This document shows, in pieces, positions 2,638-21,887 of a stretch of DNA of 64,000 nt. Position numbers and translations under genes: made by a program. Below the pieces are notes generated by a model that was given only the letters and a program-made list of their open reading frames with translations, searched no databases and was not told the DNA's origin. The stretch spans positions 21,500 to 85,499 of the forward strand of contig RBZT01000364.1 of assembly GCA_003693705.1 (NCBI GenBank). The letters are read 5' to 3'. Within the stretch, counting starts at the first letter, position 1. Every line of letters begins with the position of its first letter. This DNA is from Polymyxa betae A26-41 (lineage: Eukaryota > Protista > Endomyxa: Phytomyxea).

Positions 2638-6879
<4,242 letters not shown>

Positions 6880-7132
6880 TCTTTCAGTTCCAATCATGTT
6901 TATCCAAGGTCTTAAGGATCGCGACCAATACTATCGCTTACCAAGGATTTTATTCGTGTCTGTAATTGAAATAGTATTTTATACATTGTTGCTAATATAG
7001 CTTAATTTGACATGCTGTAGCCCTGGTAGCGCTCTCCTTTGATTCAGGATAGACCAACCATTGTTGAATGGTTGACTTCAGCGTGGCAGCTCTCCGTCAT
7101 GAAATTAAAAATGATCAGGCTTGCTACAATAT

Positions 7133-10100
7133 TTAAATTTTTGAAGACATAGGTGCTAATGACACGAGAGCTAGTTTGAATGCATTGGCTTGGTTGACGT
7201 CCATAGACACAATAATGCGGCTGACGTCGATTGATGCCTGCGTCAGCGATGATGTAACAGCAGCATTTGCTGAAACTGGAGCGAGCAGAATGTTCCCATT
7301 GGTGTCAGTTATGGAAAAATCTGTTAATGTCATCGATAAAGGCGAGATAGCAACAGAAGGCAAATGGAAAGAGAGTGAAGGGCTGGATCTATAACCAAAA
7401 ACTGTCGGAAGGCGCCGAATGTGGTACGCATCTTGCAAAGGCACGAAAATAATAACTGGGGATATATTGACTGCCAGGGACGATGGCTTCCATTTCAAGT
7501 CGCTAGACTCTCTGTCTTCAGGCTCCGAAGTGTTTGGTTTGAATTTTATTGGTAGAGTGCTCCTGAGAATGGTTATATTAGCTGACGAAAAAAAGAGAGA
7601 TGGTACGACTAACCTATATATCTGAAATAGTCTGATAAAATCGCAGAAAACGGAATCCCAAACTAGTTTTGCAGGCGAAATATTAACCTAACAGAAATTC
7701 ATAATAGCTCATATATAGGTGAACAACTTACTGAGACATCTCGTTTGGCTGAAATTTCAATATCTAGGAAAGCAGAAATTTCTGTCGACAACAAACAGCG
7801 AAGTTGTCCCCGCCGTGAAATATCAATAACAACTCTCATTACAGTGAACTTATGAGCATCTGGAAGACTTCCCGAAGCAGACAGGCGAATGATTTTTAAG
7901 GAGAGAACAGCATTAACGAACATAGCATCGAAAAAGCAAAGCGTCCTTGTTGGCCGAAGCCCAATCAGTGATAAACGAAGCTCATTTACAGAGCAAAAAT
8001 ACTGGATGATGTCTGCTAAAGCAGCTCCGGACAAGACAATCAGATAAATGTGATGGAGACAAAAAGTAGCCAGCATATCTTTGAAGGAGAACGAATACCT
8101 TTTTGTCTGAGGAACCATCTCGCAATTAAGTTCGTTTACTGAGAAACAGCTGGAAGTCGACGGTTGCACCATTTCCCTAAACATATGCGCTTTTAGTGCC
8201 AATGACAACATTTTCACAGTTGCTGAGGAGCAGGAAATCCTTCTGGTCTGAGCTCCATATTCAGCTGCCAAACCTGCAATCTAACAACGATTTCAGAGGT
8301 AAGAACTGAAAAGCGACCTTTCGGGTTTTACATGGAAGGAGACAGAGTTCAGATTCGAATAGAGTTCATCTTCCTTCCAATCTGGCATATCTTCGATATG
8401 AAGAGTTAAACAGAAATTTCCAAGCACTATCCCAGATGTGGAGTTGAGCTTCCTCACTAATGAGGTTGAGCCTTTCTTGGGTTTTTCAATCGGAATGAAC
8501 TTGAACAGTTGTTCGAATAACACGACCGATGACGAAGACTTCAAATTTAAAAGCACCGCTGCCGATCGTATAAATATAGTATTGTACTGGTTGTCCTTGT
8601 CGGCAAATGAATGCAGGCATATTGAATTTGAGTAATCCTGCACTCGTTCTCTTATGGGAACGAAATGCGTATCAAACCCATGTCTCTCTAATGATTGTCG
8701 AAATTTGTCCGAAAGATCTGTTGCAGAGAGTTGAATATTCAAAAAAGGCATGAACTCCTTGCAGTCGTCATCCCCAGTTATAATAAGCAATGGTAACAGG
8801 GTAGATTGATCAACAAAGTTGAGAGATTGTAACGAGATCGAAAGTCGCTGATGTGAAATTTCTTTGATTGCAAGAATAGACAGATGTCTAGCATGCAGAG
8901 TGGCGAACATGAATGATATTGAATAGAAATGAAAAATCACGGATGGCGCTTGAATTGAAAGAATCATAGTATCGCTGGGCATATATTCACCTGCATGTGG
9001 TTAGTTTTCAGGAATGCAAAACGAATCAGCATACTAATATCAACCACAGAATTATTGTCAGGGGGCACAGCAAGGAGATCCCAAGCCCAAGAGCCCCAGG
9101 AATTGCTCCTTGGTTCGTCTGAGGCGATCGACATCCCTCTGAACATGTATAAGTAAACATTTACAGTGTACAGCTTGCGAATACCTAGAAGTGGCAGGCG
9201 CAACCAAATCAACCGGATGTTTCGTAGATGTTGATTGAATCGATTGTGACATTGCCAACAGCAATTGAATTTGCTCAGCAGAAAGTGAAATTTCGAGAGG
9301 CGAAAGAGCTAAAATGTCTGCCTAAATGGAATTATAAAACCTGTCCAAAGGAAATCGAACAAATCTGTTACTTGAAGTTTTGGTCCTGATTTCGGGACCG
9401 GTGTCGAGATCGCAGTCCTACGAACGACGCGAACAGATGGTGTTCGATACATTCTTATCCGAATGTCAAGATCTGCTGATAGAATCAGCTGCCACAGGAA
9501 ACCATGTCTTAGAGAAATTTCCAACCTAGGCCTCTCAGCACCGTCCGAGTTGCATATGATGGCCGGCCATGGCTACGTTCCTGTAATCTAGCTTAGAACT
9601 CATAGTTTAGGTTCCCCTCATCCTAACATCTTGAAGAGAAACTTCTAATGTACACAAAGAAATCACGTAATGAGTGAGACGCCACGGGGCAGAAGGAGGT
9701 TCGATCTGAACAGCCTCCCATTCCACGTTGGTCGGGCGAACATTTGCCGACGCAAATGAGATCTGAAGACAGCCAAGATCAGGACTAGACAATGTTAATG
9801 ATAGATCTTCGATATTGACAACAGCATTAGCAACAATACGTTCTGTATATCTAGTGTTAGCGAACCTTAAAGTAAGCACAAGAAAACGAACCTAATAGCG
9901 ACTTCGTCCATGAATTCGATTCACCTCCTTGGTTAACCGATTCGTTGCTATTGCCTTCGATTTCGATAAAATCCGAATCGATGGCACCGTCTTGAAGGTT
10001 TGGTAATGTGCCAGGTTCTTCCTTGGGTTTCGATAGCTCCCGATCTATCGAAAGCCTGATCTTCATTTTTGATAAAGTAATTTCTACACTTTTTGTAGTG

Positions 10101-10488
10101 ATCGAGGTCCAGGGGATTCGAATCTGAAGCCTGAGACGATTCGTATAAGCGGTTCCTTGAACGCAACTCTACACGAATTGCACTGTACTTTCCAATCAAA
10201 GCGTAATCAATTCGAAGTTGTTGATCATAACCTAACATACGCTTTACATGCGTTAGAACGAAAGAGAAAACAAAAGGTAAATCACCCACCTGTAAAACAT
10301 CCAGTCGTAATTCAACACCCTTCAGCACAACGTCTCCGCCTGAAGCACTTTTCAGAATTCCCCACGTCAGCTATTTAGTCATTAATACTCCAAAGCGAAA
10401 GATTCAAGTCCGAATCAATCTTATCGAGATACTGGTTGGCGAATTTCATTATCAAGCCGGACAGCGTCCGCTGCATGCTGCCCAGCAT
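7133..10488 (-). CDS. VPS13B: VPS13B-like lipid transfer protein, N-terminal half (Chorein_N plus RBG repeats) encoded as a separate gene
   Basis: The spliced 5' end reads MLGSMQRTLSGLIMKFANQYLDKIDSDLNLSLWSGDVVLKGVELRLDVLQ...IQIPWTSITTKSVEITLSKMKIRL, matching the Chorein_N start of VPS13B (LSLWGGDVVL..LEL.LDVL...IHVPWT). Also contains SWGSWAWDLL and beta-strand-rich exons ending ...FKLALVSLAPMSSKI* at 7133. Confidence 0.85.
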
Positions 10489-10601
10489 CTTGGCTGTCGT
10501 ATTTTCCGTTCAGCCAGTCACTAGCGGGGAAGCCAAATGAGCGCATTCAATCGAAACATGCCACGACGATGGCTACAGAGATGTCGACAATGCCGATATA
10601 A

Positions 10602-13600
10602 ATGATGGATTTGTCAATGACGATCGCCGAAAAGCTTTTACGCCATCGACACGGAGACAGTGGGTGCAGCCCGCCCTATGTCGTCTCCCATCTGGAATCG
10701 TTGTCATTATCCCCCCATGTGGTCTGGCGTGTAAATACTGACTAGGACGCCTATGGGCAATGCCATATGTGCTCATGCAGAATTCAGCTCCACATTCACT
10801 GAGATTTCTTGTAACGTCGAATCAGTGAGGGCGTCGCTGAAGGGGAACAGCCCCAGCACTCTTCATATTGCTATTGATACCATCTCTTCGACCTATTTTC
10901 AGAACCATGACGTCGCCGTCTCAGTTTGGTGCAGTTTGATCATCTGCTGCGATTTGCTTATTGGTGTTAGATAGCCTCCACTTCAGTGAAGTCTTTGTGT
11001 AATGGGTCTGAGCGGGATTTGCTGAAACTACGAAATGGCCTGTCATTTGATAAAAGGAGGAATGGCGCCCACTTAATTTTACGCCCTTTAATTGCCCTCA
11101 TCGATATCGATTCCTTGAACGCTGGTGCTGAAGTTGTTACTGCTGCCATACCACTTCTTCCACCGAAATCTGTAGCATCCCCGAATCAGGCAGTTCAACC
11201 TGCCTTGGAAAACCTTTGTGTTTCTGTGGCCTCAACTGAAGTTGCAATTGCCGTCGACCCTAGTGCTGCGTTTGCTTTGTCTTTCCAATCAATGGAATAT
11301 CACTATAACTGTTCCTGTCGAGGAAAGCTCAGCGGACGTGTTCGCATCAGTCGACTCAAACTTCTGACGATATTTTGGAAAAAGGAATGCGATGATTATC
11401 GAACCTCGATCTCAAGTGATATCGATCTAGAAGTAATGCTAACTCCCAAGCTGGATCAAGTCGCGTTGACGCTGGAATCTGCTCTTACTTTCACTATCTC
11501 GTTTGCCATGATCGCGTTAGGTCAGAGGCTGCTCTCCAAAGTCGCACAACAGAAATTTTCTGCACAGAAACCCAACAAGACCGTTACTCCTAGGCTCGGT
11601 TTGAATATGCGATTTCACAGTATTGCTTTGGTAATTACTGGCGACAATTTCGACAGTATTACATTAACTGTAGCCCATATAGATGTGGGCAGCGAGAAAG
11701 TAACAATTGGGAATGTGGCCCTTCTGTATTCGGATCGTACGAACACGTCTTCGATTCTGTCATGCGTTTCTTCACCCGTCGCGTCCATCGATATAACTTC
11801 TAATTCCATCCTCGTAGAGCTGACAACATTTCGTGTTTGCGTCCCGCTTAAATTTCTAGCATTCTTGGCCTCTGTGCCGTCATCACCAAGCAACAGCAAC
11901 GTGGAGGCAGCGGAAATTATAATCTCTAAGCGGCGAAACTCATTACGTATTTTATTACCACTGTTCGATTTCCGACTCCAAGAGCAAGAGCAAACTTCAG
12001 TGTTAGCAATGGTTCAGATTTCTGACCTTTTTGCTCTCTGTTTGCCAACGATAAAAGAAGCTGACCACGTCTACTCTAACACGAACTCATTACGCTGCAC
12101 GTTCAGCGTAACCATTGCCAACAATGTTTTACTTCAGCAAACCCTAATAAGTCTCGAGCAAGTTTATTCAACCAACGAATTTTCAAGGCTCAATAGTTTC
12201 TATCCGGTGTCCCGAAGAGAGTCTTTATCAGTTTCTACAGATTCGATCAATATTCAGCTCTATTCTGAACAGATCAAGCCGATCCAATCTATCTTAGTGT
12301 CGCTTAACGGTCTTCCATCATCCCAAACTCGCAGCGGCCGCAAACACAGCATAACGGCACATGTTTCATCTCATGATGATTTACGCTCGCTTTATATTGA
12401 CGATGGCGCCTTTGAGCCGAAACCTGGTCGCATCACGCTGTCAGATAATGAAATCGCATGGTGCTATTTAACCTCTCGCTGTATCACTCATGTATCTCTA
12501 AGCGCTTTACACATTGCATTTGAAACTACGTTGACGCTGTAATCAAATCCTAGTTGTCTGGGTACGTTTGCTAATTTGGAAACAGATCTGCCGTAGACGT
12601 TGTCACCAATGAACGTTTTATCGTTGATCGAATCAGAGTCGATTTAAATCGAGCAACCGCGCATCAAGTCGTTTACTCTGTAATTGCGGAATCATGGGTC
12701 ATCTCATGGGCAGCATCGTCGCTATTAACCCCAGCTGATCTTGTGCAAATCATGCGAATTGATTCGATATCAGGGCCCACCGTTTCCAGTAGGTTGTTTT
12801 GAGACATTTATTGCCCATGATTGCACTATCACATTAGCCTTAGTTCCTTGTAACTCACATTATTATTGCTGCTTGTTGAAATCGCAAAGGAAAGTTCTGA
12901 CTATGCCTTGAACAGGAATCGCATCTTTAATTGTGCCCTCGCTATGTGTAACGTTAACATCAAGGAAAGACGGTTTGGAAGCGGATCATGCCATAATATC
13001 TGCTGAAGAGCTGCGCTCAAAGGCATTTACGACCAACAGGCTTTCAGTTATGACCATGCATATGAACCGTTTCAGGGGGAGTATTTTCCGGTATTCTGAC
13101 TTAGCCGAAGTCCCAATTGCCTTGACACATGAAATTGGCATTCTAATGATCAATAACGCAAATTTTCCTGGATCTGTAGTTCCGATTATGTTGCAGCAGT
13201 GCGAGAAATCTCGGGTGGTTAAAGTATCAATATCGAAAAAGCTGAGGTTGAATGTCAGCAGTTATGGTATCGATGCACTTTTATATGCTATTGAATCATT
13301 TCGTGATACACCTCAATCCGTGCCATTCGATGCAATCATATTCGCCGCCAACACCACAAAGCCTCATCACTGTAGTCAGATTCTCCTTCGTAATGATATA
13401 GGTGTCCCCATTCAGTATCGGCAGGAGGGTCAATTATCAACTGCTCTGTTATCACCGGGAGAGATGCATAACTTCACTTGGCCTTCGTAATTTTTTTCAT
13501 GCTTGATGACGCTTTTCTCACTTATGATAGGGTCATGAGGCAACAGTTGCGAATATCCTGTCATCCTGGAATATGGTCAGATCCTTTCACTCTAAAGAAT

Positions 13601-16600
13601 GCCACTGCAATTCGTTTACCGAGAAAGCAAACTTTCACCGATTTGCTTTTAAAGCAAGATGCGGCTCTGTATTCGTTCGATGCTCAACTTCATGTCGCAT
13701 CGAAATTGACTTTTGCCCTTGAGTTGAAGATTATCACCATATCGGATGACGATTTAGAAGAAACCTCTACCTATACCCTGACATTATTGCCTGAATCAGG
13801 AATCACACCAGTTCCTTTATGGCTGCCAAACGATCGGTCTGTCAATATCGAATATCAACTTCGTCCATGCATAGATGGCATCGAATGGCTCTGGGTAAGA
13901 ATAGAATCGTTTCAATTCCACTTTTCCTGCTCGTTTAATTCCTTGGATGCTTCTGCTTTGCCTCTCGTCCTTGGCTTCTTTTTTTATCTTTGTGTGATCT
14001 TTTGACTTAGTCTATAGAGTACGTTATCAACAGGTAGCGTGATCGTTTTTGAAGATGTTGACGGAAAGCACAAGCGCTCCGCCTGGCTGCATTCTGATGG
14101 TCGCACTATACGCCTGGCTCCTGCCGTTAAAGTCACTAATCAAACCGAATCAAATCTTTTCGTTCGTCTTTCTCAAACCGAGCCAATTCAAATTGATTCC
14201 CATCAATCTGTGCCCGTTTACGATTTTGATGAGAGATTACAATTGGCGGCTGCCATTCACATTGAAACCATTGATGTTGCAGAAACCGCTCTCCTCCTAT
14301 TTCCGAAGGAAGGCGAATCAGTTGCAACGTGCGTAATGTTGCCGTCGCAGCAAATGATGATTGTAGTTGCTACGTTGGATCCAGATCAGGGCTTACAGCT
14401 TGACCTTTTTTCCAGCGTCACATTCCGCAATCTGACAAGCCAGCCTTTCTCTGTGCTGGATCGCAACGACTCTGAGATTTCTATAAGCCCGAACGGTGTC
14501 GTCTCGACTTTTTGGGCAAATCCAATCGATGCTCGCTTTTACGTCGTCTACAGTGATGACGCTTTACGCAGCCAACAGCTTCACTGCAAGAGGTAATGTG
14601 CTACACATTCGCTTTTGACGTAGTTGCTAACCTTATTTACTCAGATCGGGATCTTTTGCTATTGATTTGTGTTCTGCTGTCAAGCTTAGTGTTACTAGGA
14701 TTGTCATGGTAATTCATCGCGTTTTTGCTGAATTCATTTTGTTCATTATTTACGTTGCAGTCAGTATCATGGACCACAAGCACATCATCGAAATCGTACG
14801 ACTCATCATCACGATGCGAGATAACACTGCAATCTCGATATTGCTTACATAATCGCTGCCCCTTCCCCATCTTTGTTCGTCCAGAATCACCAACGCCCGA
14901 TGCTATCGAGGTTATTACCGGTAACAGTCTTTTGTGGAAGCTGCGCCTTCAAATATTTACCTTTCTGTAGTGGCTGCCGGAGACAGCCATGATATTTTGG
15001 GCTGGTGTCTCGGTGCGCCTCCAATCCAGGCAATACGAGAGCCTCCTTCATTTGAATCTGGAGCCTGGCTATCTGACAATTCAGCATTGCGTCTGACCCG
15101 ATCAGCCGCTGATAAAAATCGATGGGGATGGTCAATGCCAATTAATTGTTTTGCAGGAGGTATCATTCTCTACTTAGATGATTTCTGGCTGATATTGCCT
15201 GGTAGAGAATCGTCAACAACGAGCACTGATTAAACTACGTAATCGCCAATCCGGCTTCGATATCGTTCTGTCGTGTGTTCGATTACGCGAAGACCATGTC
15301 ACACATCTGGTCTTGCTCAAGTTCTGACAATTATTCAACTTTGTTCTATTACTAACTCTGTCATAGCGATGTGCAAGTTCCACTCGTACTGGTGAACGCT
15401 ACTCCATATAAGCTCTCATACTTTGCATCATCGCTGAGATCTCCTACTCCGTCAAACCTGAACTTCATTAAAACTGATATCGAACCACATCAAAGCACTC
15501 AGATTCCTCCTGGTAAACACAACCATTACTTTCTTTTAAACTAACTAGAAAAACAGAGGTATCCGAAGATGAGCGGATCTTCACGAATGGCGTTACGCCA
15601 ATGGCATTGCATATTCGTGGAGTCGGTACCGAATGGTCTCCAGAACCCATTCTGCTTCGTAATGGTGTTCGTGCTCAATCTTTAGAACTGCCCTACATAT
15701 CATCAGGGTCATTGCATGTCCCGCAACCTCATATGCTAGGAAGCTCGCCAGCTCGAGCGGTCAAATCATCCAACAAACTGTTAGCTCTAGAGGTAAACAT
15801 GAACTGTTAACATTTTCGACGGCTCGTTTATTTTCTTCATTATATCTAGCTTTTGCCATAATTTTGCTATAAGCTTGTTTAGCTTTGAATAAAAGTTCTC
15901 AGATCTGTGAGATAATCCAATAATCATGTTGTTCAAGGTGGATTGCCTAGACCGGAATGGGACACTGGTTACAGTGATCGGTGTAAAAGACCATTCAGAA
16001 GAAGCAGTAGCGCTTCCAGAACACTCGTCGATATTGGAGATAGCTGCAGACTGTATTGAGGTATGCTTCCTGACGGCTTCAGCTGGCGCCGGATTCGCTG
16101 TCATTCTCGAGGATGTGGCCCTTTGCATAAATCAGCAGTTTGAACGGGTGTTTGAGTGTTTCTCATTTCGATTTGCAGTTAACAATTTCTTAGCGCTATG
16201 CCCGGATTTTACACGAACTCTCGAAACCGTTTGTGCCTTGCCGAACTGCTTCTCTACGAATTCGTTCCTTTCAACTGGAACACACGGCTAATCCTGTCGA
16301 ATATCCCATCGTCGCGCATAAGGCAGATCATGAGAGCAACAGTAGTTCCATTGAAATCCTTGTCTGTTTTGGTACCCAAATTGATTCGAATGATGAGCAC
16401 CAGCAAACCCCGCTTATGTATATTATGCATGCGGTTCATATTCAGGTTGGGAAGATGCTCCCTTCCTCGCTTGCAATGACCTCTTTGTGCAGAAATTGAG
16501 TATCTCGTTAGCGCCTTTTCGCTTATATATCGAAGACGCCTTCATATCAACGGTAACGGAATTCATCCACGAGCTCACGAGATCAATTTTCAAGATATAT

Positions 16601-18331
16601 GGCCAAACGGAATCTGCTTCTCAACCTGTTTGAACCCTTGTGCTAATTGCTTCCATCCAAATGACAAAGATCTAGGTGCAGGCTAGCGTAGGATGGCGCT
16701 CGGATCCGGAATTCGTTGCCTTATTAAATAACTCAAGTAAGCCTCGATTTGCTGTGCACCATTTATATATCAGCTCTATCGAACTCAGGTTGGTTGTGAT
16801 ATCTGGCTATTTCTTAGTATTTCTTGTTATATTGACTGTCAGATTGACGTATTCCGGGTCTCGGCCGTATTTAGCCTGCCAGTCCTTACCGATCACGCTT
16901 GCCGCTTTGGAGCTATCGTCGGTTCTATCTCCTACTGACCGTCTGATCAAGGAGCTTTCTGCGAATTATCTCGCCGTAATTCTTCTTCGTTCTCATATAA
17001 TCTCCTCTAAAGTACAATCAGGATGTGATCATGATTGCACCAGTTCTGTTCGGCTCAATGGATTTGTTGGGAAACCCAACGCAGCTCATTAGCAGCATAT
17101 CTCGAGGTATTGGAGATCTTGTCAGATTGCCAACTCGTGCCTTGACTCAAGGTAGCCTCTACGGAACTGTTCATGGCATTTATTCTCAGCATTCTTAGGG
17201 CCAAGGGCTTTAGTTTGGGCTACCTTGCAGGGTGTCGGATCACTGCTTCATAATATGAGCGAAGGAACTTTGACTTCAGTTAGCGGATTTGCCCACAGTT
17301 TGGCTCGGAATGTGGGTGGAGTTTCGCCTGATCACTACCATCTTTTTCAAACAAATCGCAATTCAGCAGCTGTAAATCAGTTTCTGACTGCACTGCTCGT
17401 TGTGCTAACCTGGTTCAGATTCATCAACGTGGGATCTCGACAGGGCTGGTTAATGGCGCCACCAGTCTTGCTACGGGCTTGGTATTAGGCGTAACAGGTT
17501 AATACACGAATTCTCCATCCATGCTTATCATGTGAGACTAACGCATGCTGACAGGAGTTGTCAGTGCACCCATACGTGGAGTTGCCCGCCAAGTAGGTTT
17601 ATTAATTTAAACATTTTAAGGTAATTAATGTATATAGGGTACATGGGGATTTGTAAAAGGCGTGGGTGCTGGGCTAGCTGGCCTAATCACAAAGGTAAGA
17701 TTTGAGTGGTCTCAATCTGACCTTATAATGATTATTAGCCCGTTTCTGGAGCGTTGGATATGGTTAGTGAAACTAGCCGAGGAATAGCTGCTAGTGCTGG
17801 TCTGTCACCAACCTTTCCTGCGCTTAAGTACCAGCAAGAGCCAACTGCTCATGTAAATCATCTGTTGATCTGATATTGACGGATTGTGATTGTATATAGG
17901 ACGATATCTTTGGCCAAATTTCAACTCTACGTTTGAAAGCAATATCGCAGAATATGCAGGAGAGCTACAGAAAACACATTTACGCCAATAGCGTCCTTGA
18001 TGCAGGTTCTTATTATATTATTGTATTATTATGCTTTCTGTGATTATCACCATTCGTTTGTTTCATAGCTGTCTTACATCGCTTATTTGAATCTTTAGAT
18101 GGAGCATTGTTATACGAACGTGCGTTGATTGTTTGCACGCATGCAACAATGCATATAATAGCTCCTGGATCGGACCGGGTTGTACAATCTTTGGCATATA
18201 ACCAGGTTCAAGTGAATTTCTCGGGTTCTCACTCTGTTGAAGTTAGACATAAGGGAGACGTTTTGTTTCATTTCAAGACAGACCATACGACCAGACAGTC
18301 GTTCGTCAATTGTATATGCCAGAGTCTTTAG
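10602..18331 (+). CDS. VPS13B: VPS13B-like lipid transfer protein, C-terminal half (RBG repeats, VPS13B-type insert, VAB/SHR-BD repeats, ATG_C, PH); start codon tentative
   Basis: HDDLR...P...IAWCYLTSRCITHV (VPS13B-type insert); VAB-like LRNDIGVPIQYRQ, VTNQTESNLFVR and LHNRCPFPIFVR; C-terminal FGSMDLLGNPTQLISSISRGIGDLVRLP, GVGSLLHNMSEGTLTSVSGFAHSLARN, GVGAGLAGLITK; terminal PH-like exon ending at 18331. No Chorein_N on this strand. Confidence 0.85.
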
Positions 18332-18485
18332 CACAAATGGAATGCATAATGGCTGAAAACAGGACGATGACCACAGTTTATGCATCCATTTGAAGGTTTG
18401 ATATGAAGTCTCGTCTACACGGAGCAATAAATCGCCTGATAGCGGTTGCTTTGTGGTTAATGCTTAATGCCATTGTTTAATTCAT

Positions 18486-20949
18486 TTATACTGCCTCAGC
18501 TGTCCGTTCCAGTATCACTTTCACATCAGACTCGGAATGCTCCAAAGCGAGAGCATAGATATCTGAATAATTACTGGCATAGTGAACACAGATCTCGCCT
18601 TTCACATAGTTAGGCAGCTCTTCAAACTCGGCCTTGTTTTCTGCTGGAAGGACAATATCAGTACAACCAGACCGTCGAGCTGCCATGACTTTCTCTCGAA
18701 CGCCTCCGATTCGTAATACTTTCCCGGTTAAAGTCACTTCACCAGTCATGGCTAAATTGTTGGTGACTGGGCGGTTCAAAGCCAAAGACAATAAAGATGT
18801 GACCATTGCACAACCGGCGCTTGGTCCGTCTTTCGGGGTCCCACCGCATGGTACATGCATGTGAATGGCACATGTGTCCAGCACCGAATTTTCAGGGTCG
18901 ATTTTGGCTAAAAATGCCTTTGCGTATGACAATGCAATATTTGAAGATTCGGTCATGACTTCACCCAAGTGTCCAGTAGTCTTTAGCGACGCCGAACCTT
19001 TGCTTGCGATGCTTTCGATATATAGTGTTTGCCCACCATGAGACGTATATGCCAATCCCATAACAACTCCAGGAGGTGTTCTGTCATGATAACGATCGCT
19101 CATGTAAACAGGTAAGCCTACGTAATCGCAAAGATTCTCAGGAGTTATCACGATTTTCTCTTTGAACTCTGCAGCGACCTGCAATGTCACTTTTCGGAAA
19201 ATCTTATCGAGGTGCTGGCGAAGATTACGAACACCCGCCTCCCTGCAGTATCCTCGAATTAAAACACCAAGCGCTTCCTCAGTGATTTCTGCCTTTTCGT
19301 CCGTGAGGCCGCAATCGGTGAGTGCCCGAGGCACCAAATACTTTTGAGCAATGGCAATCTTTTCTTCCGTTACATAACCAGAAAGCGAAATGACCTCCAT
19401 TCGGTCCAACAACGGCCGAGGGATCGTTTCCAGAGTGTTGGCGGTCACTAGAAACAGAACTTTGCTGACATCAAAGGGAACGTCCAGATAATGGTCCAAA
19501 AACGAATTGTTCTGCTCTGGATCTAACACCTATAAACATGTTAGCAAAAATAGCATTCCAAAAAGACAATAACTCTACCTCAAGCAAAGCTGATCCGGGG
19601 TCTCCGTTAACGCCCCTTCCAACTTTATCGATTTCATCGATAAGCAAAACAGGATTGCTAGTCTGCGTCACTTTCAAAGCCTGGATAAGCTTTCCAGGCA
19701 TGGCGCCGACATAAGTTCTTCGGTGCCCTTTGATCTCAGCAACATCGGTCATACCGCCAACAGAGAACCGGAAGAATTTCCGATCGAGGGCTCGGGCGAT
19801 CGACTTTCCAATACTCGTCTTTCCAGTGCCTGGTGGACCAACCAGACACAGAATCTTGCCATTGACGGTACCTTTCAAGCTGCCGACAGCAATCAGCTCC
19901 ATGATGCGCTCTTTAACGTCGTCCAAACCAAAATGGTCGTCGTTCAGGACTTGCCGAGCTTTATCCAGATTGAAATTCTCAGGTGTAGAGACACCCCAGG
20001 GTAAGATAGTAAGCCAATCCAGATAATTTCTCGTGACAGCGAATTCAGACGATGAAGGCTCTAGCCCGCTCAACTTAGCACATTCCTCGTTGATCGTGCT
20101 CTGGACGGGTTCAGGGATTTGTCGAGTGCCGCATCGAGCTTGGAATTTTGATAGCAGGACGTCTTTCTCGTCTGTCTCCATGCCGAGCTCCTTCTTGATC
20201 GATTTCAATTGCTCCATCAGCACGAAACGTCGGTGGGTTTTGTTGCCGCCCGGGTCCATTTGGCGATGCAATTGCGATTGTACCTCTCCATAAGCGATCT
20301 CCTTCCTTAGCAATTGCAAAGTTAATTTCATTCGCTCGGGAATCGAAGTGCATTCGAGCACTGCTTGTGCAGCGGCATTGTCTACATTGGTAATCAGACC
20401 AGCAACACAGTCGGCCAGATCGCCGGGATTGGAGACGTCGACTTGCTCGACAATGGTGGAAAATTGCTCCTTAAAGACCGGGCGAAGTTTCAGAATCTCT
20501 TTGCAGGCCAAGACGATTTCGTTAGTCAACGCGGTTAAATCTTCAGTGTATGCTTCGTCGGCAATCGTTTCCACAGCAACCTGAAATGGGTCGGTGGCAA
20601 CAGCTTCAGTTGCATAAATTCTATTCAAGCCGATAACGACGACTTGCGATTGCCCTTGCTTATGAGGAAACACGCGAAGCACCTGGGCTAACAGCCCGGT
20701 CTGATGAATATGCTCGATTTTGTTAAAGGAGCAATCGTTCGAGACGTCTTTCGACATAAACAGGCCTACATTCATGGGCAGGCCGTCGCGAAGTACTTGC
20801 AAGGTCGAAGCGAACTTTTCGTTCGGTACTACAATCGGGGCAACAATCCCTGGGAAGATCGGCCTGCGATACAGCGGCAGTGCCAGCAGCGACGGCGGCG
20901 TCACGAGTCCGCCAAATCGCCGCCTTTGGATCAGCCTCGAGACAGTCAT
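18486..20949 (-). CDS. LONP1: Mitochondrial Lon protease (LONP1/PIM1); one intron 19530-19578
   Basis: Arg-rich presequence MTVSRLIQRRRF, LON-N domain, Walker A GPPGTGKTS, LIDEIDK, catalytic PKDGPSAG and IGGVREK. Confidence 0.95.
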
Positions 20950-21350
20950 TGCAACCACGATTGTTTATGACGATAACAGCATGAGGACCCACAGACTGTC
21001 AGGACAATGCCTGTCCAGCAACAGTCACATCCGTCATGATTGGGCACGAGGCGCAGCCAGCATCACTGACCTGAATACGGGCGCGGCCTTCATCGCCACT
21101 CTGAGACAGCACCCTTCTGCCTTCTATTCGGTTCTGGAATCGACGCGTGATATCGAACAATATCTCGTTCTATAAGCGCTTCCAATTTACAATCACAGCT
21201 GAATTACCAGCTAAAATTATAAAGTACTTACCCAGAGATCGAGTTTGCATTGAAGGAAGATTCATAAAGCTGTCTTAAAATTAGCAAATTCCGATTTATT
21301 GAACGGAGATCTGGTTTTTGTATAGTATAAATGAGAGGGCATAAACACAT

Positions 21351-21887
21351 TTACTGAGAAACGGCCTTGAACGAAACGATCATGCGGATCCAAACAGCAG
21401 TGTTGGGATCGACACCTTCAGGGGCCTGCAAGACTGTGACGAGAACGTCCTTGTCACCAGCGGCGAAAGCCTCCTGAATGCCATTGGACATTTCTTCGTC
21501 TTCCGGCAATTTAACGTCCTCGATGGGGTTACCATCTTCATCCATGATGTGGACGAAGCCATCGGCAACATCGATGACCTGGAATTCAGTCTTTGTGACA
21601 ATGGGGACCGAGACGTTGTGGGAAGTAGGAGTCATATCTTCATACTTCTTGTTGGTCAGCACATCAACACCAACGATGTTCATCTTGGCGTGTCCGTGCT
21701 TGCCGGTCTTCGAGGTCGACATCGACATAATCTACATACGTCGGTTAAAAACGATATCGAAGGGAGTCCGGGCCGTACTGACTTTGCATGGGTGGCCCTT
21801 GATTTGGATGTATCCTCCCTTCTTCAAGCCGCCCGCCTTCAGCGGCGTCATCTTGGCCGCATTCTCGCCCGCTTCGACGTCGCCCAT
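21351..21887 (-). CDS. EIF5A: Translation factor eIF5A; intron 21732-21782
   Basis: Hypusine motif [12 protein letters not shown]. Exon 1 reads [35 protein letters not shown]. Confidence 0.97.

Follow-up and report, generated by a model that had tools for sequence, protein, structure and literature searches.

The current picture of a bridge-like lipid transfer protein is one rod, with an uninterrupted groove that reaches from one membrane to another. Does such a rod have to be made as one chain? The question is raised by a locus of a protist that parasitizes sugar-beet roots, Polymyxa betae A26-41 (Endomyxa: Phytomyxea), in which a gene of the VPS13 family lies in two pieces, head to head, one on either strand. 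The locus was analyzed within a stretch of 64,000 nucleotides (GenBank assembly GCA_003693705.1, contig RBZT01000364.1, positions 21,500 to 85,499 of the forward strand), hereafter the window, to which all coordinates refer. A first-pass annotation, made from the letters alone, had described a VPS13 divided into two intact and complementary halves, and the orientation of the locus, the expression of both genes and their non-overlapping paralog matches bear this description out. Since the parts are found on two divergent spliced transcripts with no joint between them, a complete VPS13 is encoded by neither gene on its own, which suggests a lipid channel made from two separate chains, or else two shorter channels. 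The two genes, with the features found in them, are as follows (aa, amino acids; UTR, untranslated region; RBG, repeating beta-groove, the unit of which the groove is built).

7133..10488, minus strand: N-half gene; 13 exons, 921 aa, with Chorein-N and about six RBG units; 12 introns backed by RNA, open frame
10489..10752, no strand: 264 bp with the 5' UTRs of both genes and a divergent promoter; from the contig ends of each gene
10753..18331, plus strand: C-half gene; 25 exons, 2052 aa, without Chorein-N; M-G-N-A-I-C start followed by about four RBG-like units
12357..12736, plus strand: DDLR..W.Y..R insert (about aa 520-630), a candidate for the jelly-roll module of VPS13B; seen in the translation
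13371..15991, plus strand: six VAB repeats; about aa 800-1472, from repeat-start motifs
16876..17804, plus strand: final RBG strands together with the amphipathic helices of ATG2_C; about aa 1700-1914, by phmmer against VPS13s of the same genome
17950..18328, plus strand: terminal PH-like domain, called by inspection from position and strand pattern

Gene structure, expression and orientation of the locus

The N-half gene was found exactly where it had been annotated, with its ATG at 10488 and its stop codon at 7133-7135. All 12 introns (CT..AC on the plus strand) are removed in spliced contigs from three public RNA runs of three studies, the joined exons form a single open frame of 921 aa, and the RNA contigs continue past the stop into a 3' UTR. 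For the C-half gene, previously placed at about 10602-18331, the stop (18329-18331) stood, while the start had to be moved to the ATG at 10753. The ATG at 10602 was rejected, as an in-frame stop follows at 10732-10734, no intron is seen within 10388-10923, and the contigs of this gene begin at 10692 and 10719. In an independent record, KMS93785.1, gene calling settled on the ATG at 10753 as well. This record, a "sugar-beet" hypothetical protein (BVRB_027980) on an 820-bp contig, differs from 10638-11457 by one UTR base, and Polymyxa DNA is evidently present in the Beta vulgaris assembly GCA_000510975.1.

The C-half model was obtained by ab initio prediction followed by hand correction, and contains GT-AG introns only. 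Introns 10924-10970 and 12539-12585 are spliced out in the RNA runs, and a third (12789-12915) was set by a loose end. The summed length of the remaining introns is backed indirectly by the lengths of two RNA unitigs, each of which extends from the big exon across the neighboring Lon gene. With the modelled introns removed, their ends would fall at about 21001 and 21004, which is 52-55 nt upstream of the Lon ATG, and since this is where the 5' end of Lon is expected, it provides an indirect check on the model. Codon-usage scores gave no separation of reading frames. In total, the two genes have 36 canonical introns, with uninterrupted frames of 921 and 2052 aa, so that the long frames and intact introns ascribed to both halves are confirmed; their sum of 2973 aa agrees with the anticipated size near that of a normal VPS13. 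The source genome is compact, with a typical intron of about 50 nt, and its draft comprises 1,001 contigs and 27,085,946 bp at 45% GC, from Illumina data only (PMC6328671).

Spliced contigs are present for each gene in the RNA runs, and the expression of both halves, earlier only proposed, is thereby observed. The head-to-head junction is spanned by one RNA unitig (7037-11455), which lacks minus-type introns on its left and a plus-type intron on its right. Minus-gene contigs end at 10606 and 10641, and the distance from ATG to ATG is 264 bp; the short divergent layout of a tiny shared bidirectional promoter was thus retained, but not its assumed size of about 110 bp. Two upstream open reading frames of 18 and 5 aa, which start at 10678 and 10717, both end at the stop codon 10732-10734; this lies 18 nt ahead of the ATG of the C-half, whose translation they could tune.

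Could the 7-10.5 kb segment simply be mis-oriented in the reference? A 41.7-kb unitig from a DNA run, possibly of the same strain but put together from reads without recourse to the published assembly, covers 6800-12790 with zero differences, and two further RNA unitigs span the junction with the adjoining ISWI gene. No inverted repeat longer than 25 nt was found within 6700-11000, and none that pairs both junctions. With the junctions spanned by unitigs and no flanking inverted repeats, the orientation of the reference is upheld and mis-assembly is largely refuted as the cause of the split.

Domain content and family membership

Exons 2-4 of the N-half gave weak matches to the Pfam profile VPS13_N (E 0.3 and 0.023, far below cut-off). 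These came from trimmed exons; the long open frames as such had no Pfam match. Two adjacent exons match this profile consecutively, at positions 32-56 and 64-92, and it is the only family to be matched among 24,736 Pfam models. Together with the alignment of aa 5-85 to the Chorein-N region of the VPS13 paralogs encoded in the same genome (E 6e-5), this supports the Chorein_N domain annotated at the start of the gene. No BLTP3A_B or ATG2 profile match was obtained for the N-half exons, and Pfam weakly favors VPS13 over SHIP164 for this half. The motifs LSLW.GDVVL and LDVL and the RBG2 motifs that follow are taken by us to be VPS13B-like, and part of the Chorein region presumably aligns well with SHIP164 too. 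In an acidic loop of Chorein-N (about aa 115-127; 9935-9975, minus strand), a D-F-I-E-I core resembles an Atg8-binding or a weak FFAT-like motif; a search for canonical FFAT motifs found none in either half. Along the remainder of the N-half, a hidden Markov model (HMM) of the RBG unit, built from the paralogs only, gives separate peaks above the 99th percentile of shuffled sequences, and the last 60-residue window reaches 9 bits vs a shuffled maximum of 6.9. The stop follows about 7 aa beyond the last strand-helix unit, as seen by inspection, and by these signs the N-half ends directly after a complete RBG unit. No coiled coil was seen beyond this unit by inspection, and the terminal segment of the chain has an amphipathic moment of 0.12 vs 0.42 for the first helix.

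In the C-half, about aa 1700-1914 match the ATG2_C region in two of the genome's other VPS13s (E 1.5e-25 and 1e-12 by phmmer), which substantiates the ATG_C domain assigned to this gene. The VAB repeats attributed to it were recovered as well, with five repeat-start motifs found by pattern (aa 803, 996, 1093, 1199 and 1332) and a sixth by eye near aa 934. Exon 12912-13487 has VPS13_M/VAB look-alikes in the Atlas with scores of 0.93-0.95, below the recognition threshold of the tool, with the VAB clusters at 0.92-0.93, and single exons gave no Pfam match for VAB repeats. The DDLR..W.Y..R stretch reported earlier is present at about aa 526-560, and is a candidate for the VPS13B-type insert; a single-sequence model of the region was too poor to show a fold. 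No Pfam match was obtained for the last exon, and the PH-like call follows only from its position and strand pattern. The 523-aa exon has Atlas look-alikes in the RBG family, again below the recognition threshold. A length-limited homolog search with this exon gave no match, and beyond a fragment of the gene itself a full-library search returned just one bacterial repeat protein, which is unrelated. The first apparent RBG strand begins about 13 residues after the start. The N-terminus itself, M-G-N-A-I-C, fits the general pattern for N-myristoylation with a nearby cysteine for S-acylation; the pattern is permissive and the fit was spotted after the fact, so that the start of the C-chain is a possible candidate for a myristoyl/S-acyl anchor.

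The two halves are complementary and non-overlapping, as had been proposed, since they match opposite ends of intact paralogs in the same genome. The N-half shows no match to the C-terminal end of these paralogs, consistent with the stated lack of C-terminal adaptor domains, and the C-half none to their N-terminal end, consistent with the lack of Chorein_N. By eye, six RBG units were counted in the N-half and seven in the C-half (four, then the insert, one, the VAB repeats and two). With this count the insert falls in the loop between units 10 and 11, the position published for it in human VPS13B; in PMC7613979 and PMC11451052, the VPS13B insert lies upstream of VAB. From the count and the motifs we infer a total of 13 RBG units and a protein of probable VPS13B type. 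An ATG2 would combine Chorein-N and ATG2_C in one chain without VAB, and here the C-half carries VAB. Elsewhere in the genome, five colinear VPS13s (two loci on C1, and one each on C482, C685 and C749) and an intact ATG2 (C971) were identified, which for a parasite with a genome of 27 Mb is a large RBG set. The rest of the genome yielded no further copy of the N-half or the C-half, and no SHIP164/BLTP3 was detected there by a search flagged as uninformative. Sequence searches of the PDB with the exons of the halves gave no matches.

Proposed origin by inversion

The neighbors of the two genes, both convergent with them, bear on how the split arose. ISWI lies on the plus strand with its stop at 6877-6879 and adjoins the N-half.

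6880..7132, no strand: tail-to-tail gap between ISWI and the N-half, presumed left breakpoint; spanned by RNA and DNA unitigs
18486..20949, minus strand: Lon protease gene, convergent with the C-half; 2 exons, 804 aa

The simplest history, and one already suggested by the first-pass annotation, would be a single inversion between ISWI and the middle of VPS13B, comprising the promoter and the 5' third of the gene. The ancestral order would have been ISWI, promoter, N-half, C-half and Lon, before the promoter and N-half were flipped. This would place the old promoter back to back with the C-half, to fire in both directions, and let the flipped N-half terminate in the terminator region of ISWI; by such reuse both pieces would be expressed without any new element. 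The left breakpoint is presumed to lie in 6880-7132 and the right-hand one near 10730-10790. Judged from the short tail after the last unit of the N-half and the short lead before the first strand of the C-half (about 7 and 13 residues), the cut appears to sit in an inter-unit loop, by eye between RBG units 6 and 7, with both chains keeping whole units.

RNA unitigs link both convergent pairs, ISWI with the N-half (6800-7132) and the C-half with Lon (18332-18485), which suggests that the 3' UTRs of the convergent neighbors overlap. Immediately upstream of Lon, on the same strand, is an eIF5A-like open reading frame (18486-21728 for the pair). The eIF5A-Lon pair was also found on a Logan contig (ERR10755939), with a 70% identical Lon and probably from a relative, and this sample may hold an orthologous VPS13B locus. 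Metagenome scans with the big C-half exon and an ISWI exon found no locus containing either half.

A possible bridge from two chains

We consider it probable that the locus encodes a two-chain VPS13 with both halves kept by selection, either as a re-docked groove or as separable modules, that is, a bridge that could be assembled, switched or re-paired. The reading that we favor within this frame, at a probability of about 0.4, is that the two chains come together again, strand against strand, as a single lipid bridge. Both chains would be co-expressed from the shared promoter, and pairing of the N-chain's last beta-strand with the C-chain's first strand would restore a continuous groove, which is the least certain step. 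By analogy to VPS13B, the assembled bridge would then carry out bulk lipid transfer at contacts of the Golgi or endosomes. According to PMC7613979, neighboring RBG units are predicted to keep their sheets directly continuous across the VAB insert as a whole, and human VPS13B with a Halo/GFP tag in the RBG5/6 loop still reaches the Golgi (PMC11451052), so that backbone continuity at such a loop looks dispensable. A precedent for reassembly is split-Doa10, a split nuclear gene whose chains come together again to form an enzyme that is active (PMC3464245).

Several points weigh against this. Re-docking is a proposal from sequence, and two single-sequence AlphaFold models have a predicted local distance difference test score (pLDDT) of only 33 and 32. 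The RBG count was made by eye and scans recover part of the units: a motif scan was marginal in aa 1-790 of the C-half (P 0.025-0.055) and not significant in the N-half, and the paralog-built HMM gives no score on aa 1-500 of the C-half. For central VPS13B units, a poor alignment with A-type units has been reported. An M-G-N-A-I-C lipid anchor would sit right at the proposed joint and would suit independent use better. Moreover, Lon searches, metagenome scans and exact look-ups of the window's open reading frames failed to turn up an orthologue in Plasmodiophora, Spongospora or P. graminis.

The same fission may instead have left two independent short bridges, a SHIP164-like N-chain with an open end and a C-chain in which an acyl anchor replaces Chorein-N. 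The start of the C-chain and the SHIP164-like architecture of the N-chain agree with this, and bridges of six (SHIP164), eight (ATG2) and nine units (VPS13X) exist according to PMC7613979. We nevertheless hold it to be rather unlikely, as two new working proteins would be required at once at the break, the N-chain has neither a coiled coil nor a strongly amphipathic cap, and the acylation pattern is permissive. Less likely again is a recent inversion that knocked out a dispensable VPS13B, with its pieces transcribed by default and as yet undecayed. VPS13B has been lost in many lineages (PMC7613979, PMC10683392), other VPS13s and an ATG2 remain in this genome, and isolates are near-identical at the locus (no substitution in the RNA runs, one UTR indel in 820 bp). 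On the other hand, about 530 single-base target sites for nonsense or splice mutations are intact, a state that under neutrality would last for only a few tenths of a percent of divergence, and a break that both falls between units and leaves an in-frame ATG about 13 codons ahead of the first strand would arise by chance in an estimated few percent of cases.

A further explanation, to which we give slightly less credence than to the knockout, makes the halves separate RBG genes that became neighbors, i.e. a SHIP164/BLTP3 or short paralog beside an N-truncated VPS13B. The architecture of the N-half would fit, as would the failure to find SHIP164 elsewhere, had that search been informative; yet the exons match VPS13_N and neither BLTP3A_B nor ATG2, a chance head-to-head pairing of two out of some ten RBG genes is unlikely, and a VPS13B without its first half would need an explanation of its own. 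That the transcripts are joined into one mRNA, for instance by the trans-splicing once suggested for the halves, draws on their complementarity and nothing more. It is very improbable, as no chimeric or strand-switching joint and no loose end was found at either break in the three RNA runs (where contigs can lose rare forms), and the N-half mRNA continues into its 3' UTR. Most improbable of all is an assembly artefact; the reference is a short-read draft (PMC6328671), but the 41.7-kb DNA unitig, the junction-spanning RNA unitigs and the lack of suitable inverted repeats speak against it.

Significance and comparison with known systems

VPS13B is the Cohen-syndrome protein, with 4000 residues and hard to express. 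The locus offers a candidate site at about RBG6/7 where a cut in it may be tolerated, and supplying the protein in two parts would give research a useful tool. With a natural division at an RBG boundary, it becomes directly testable whether the groove needs backbone continuity or whether RBG modules can join end to end, as already speculated for SHIP164. As a clean case of gene fission, one inversion would have supplied promoter and terminator together; were it only a recent knockout, the locus would be a minor instance of VPS13B loss, caught early. Gene fission and the protein family are both known; the split of a VPS13 and the expression of both its halves are firmly established here, and would surprise specialists. 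In the searchable literature we found neither a naturally split VPS13 or other RBG bridge nor a paper on VPS13 in Plasmodiophora, and the available text of two surveys (PMC7613979, PMC10683392) contains no mention of a split VPS13.

End to end, the pair appears to have the same order of parts as VPS13B/COH1/BLTP5B of humans, oomycetes and green algae (PMC7613979, PMC10683392, PMC11451052), namely Chorein-N, RBG units, the candidate insert before VAB, six VAB repeats, the last RBG units, ATG2_C and a putative PH-like end. The total of roughly 3000 aa and the lack of a canonical FFAT motif are also as in VPS13B. The described VPS13s that we found are, however, all single polypeptides, whereas here two genes on opposite strands encode two chains. 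The N-chain resembles SHIP164/BLTP3A-B in consisting of Chorein-N and about six RBG units with an unspecialized end, and for SHIP164 end-to-end dimerization via the last strands has been proposed. The proposed dimer is a homodimer, tail to tail, unlike this pair, and the N-half has neither a BLTP3A_B match nor the C-terminal coiled coil of the opisthokont members. The closest likeness in genetic terms is split-Doa10 of Kluyveromyces (PMC3464245), likewise a nuclear gene divided into two expressed parts. It belongs to a different protein class and its parts are colinear with an inserted promoter, while those of the P. betae VPS13 are inverted, head to head.

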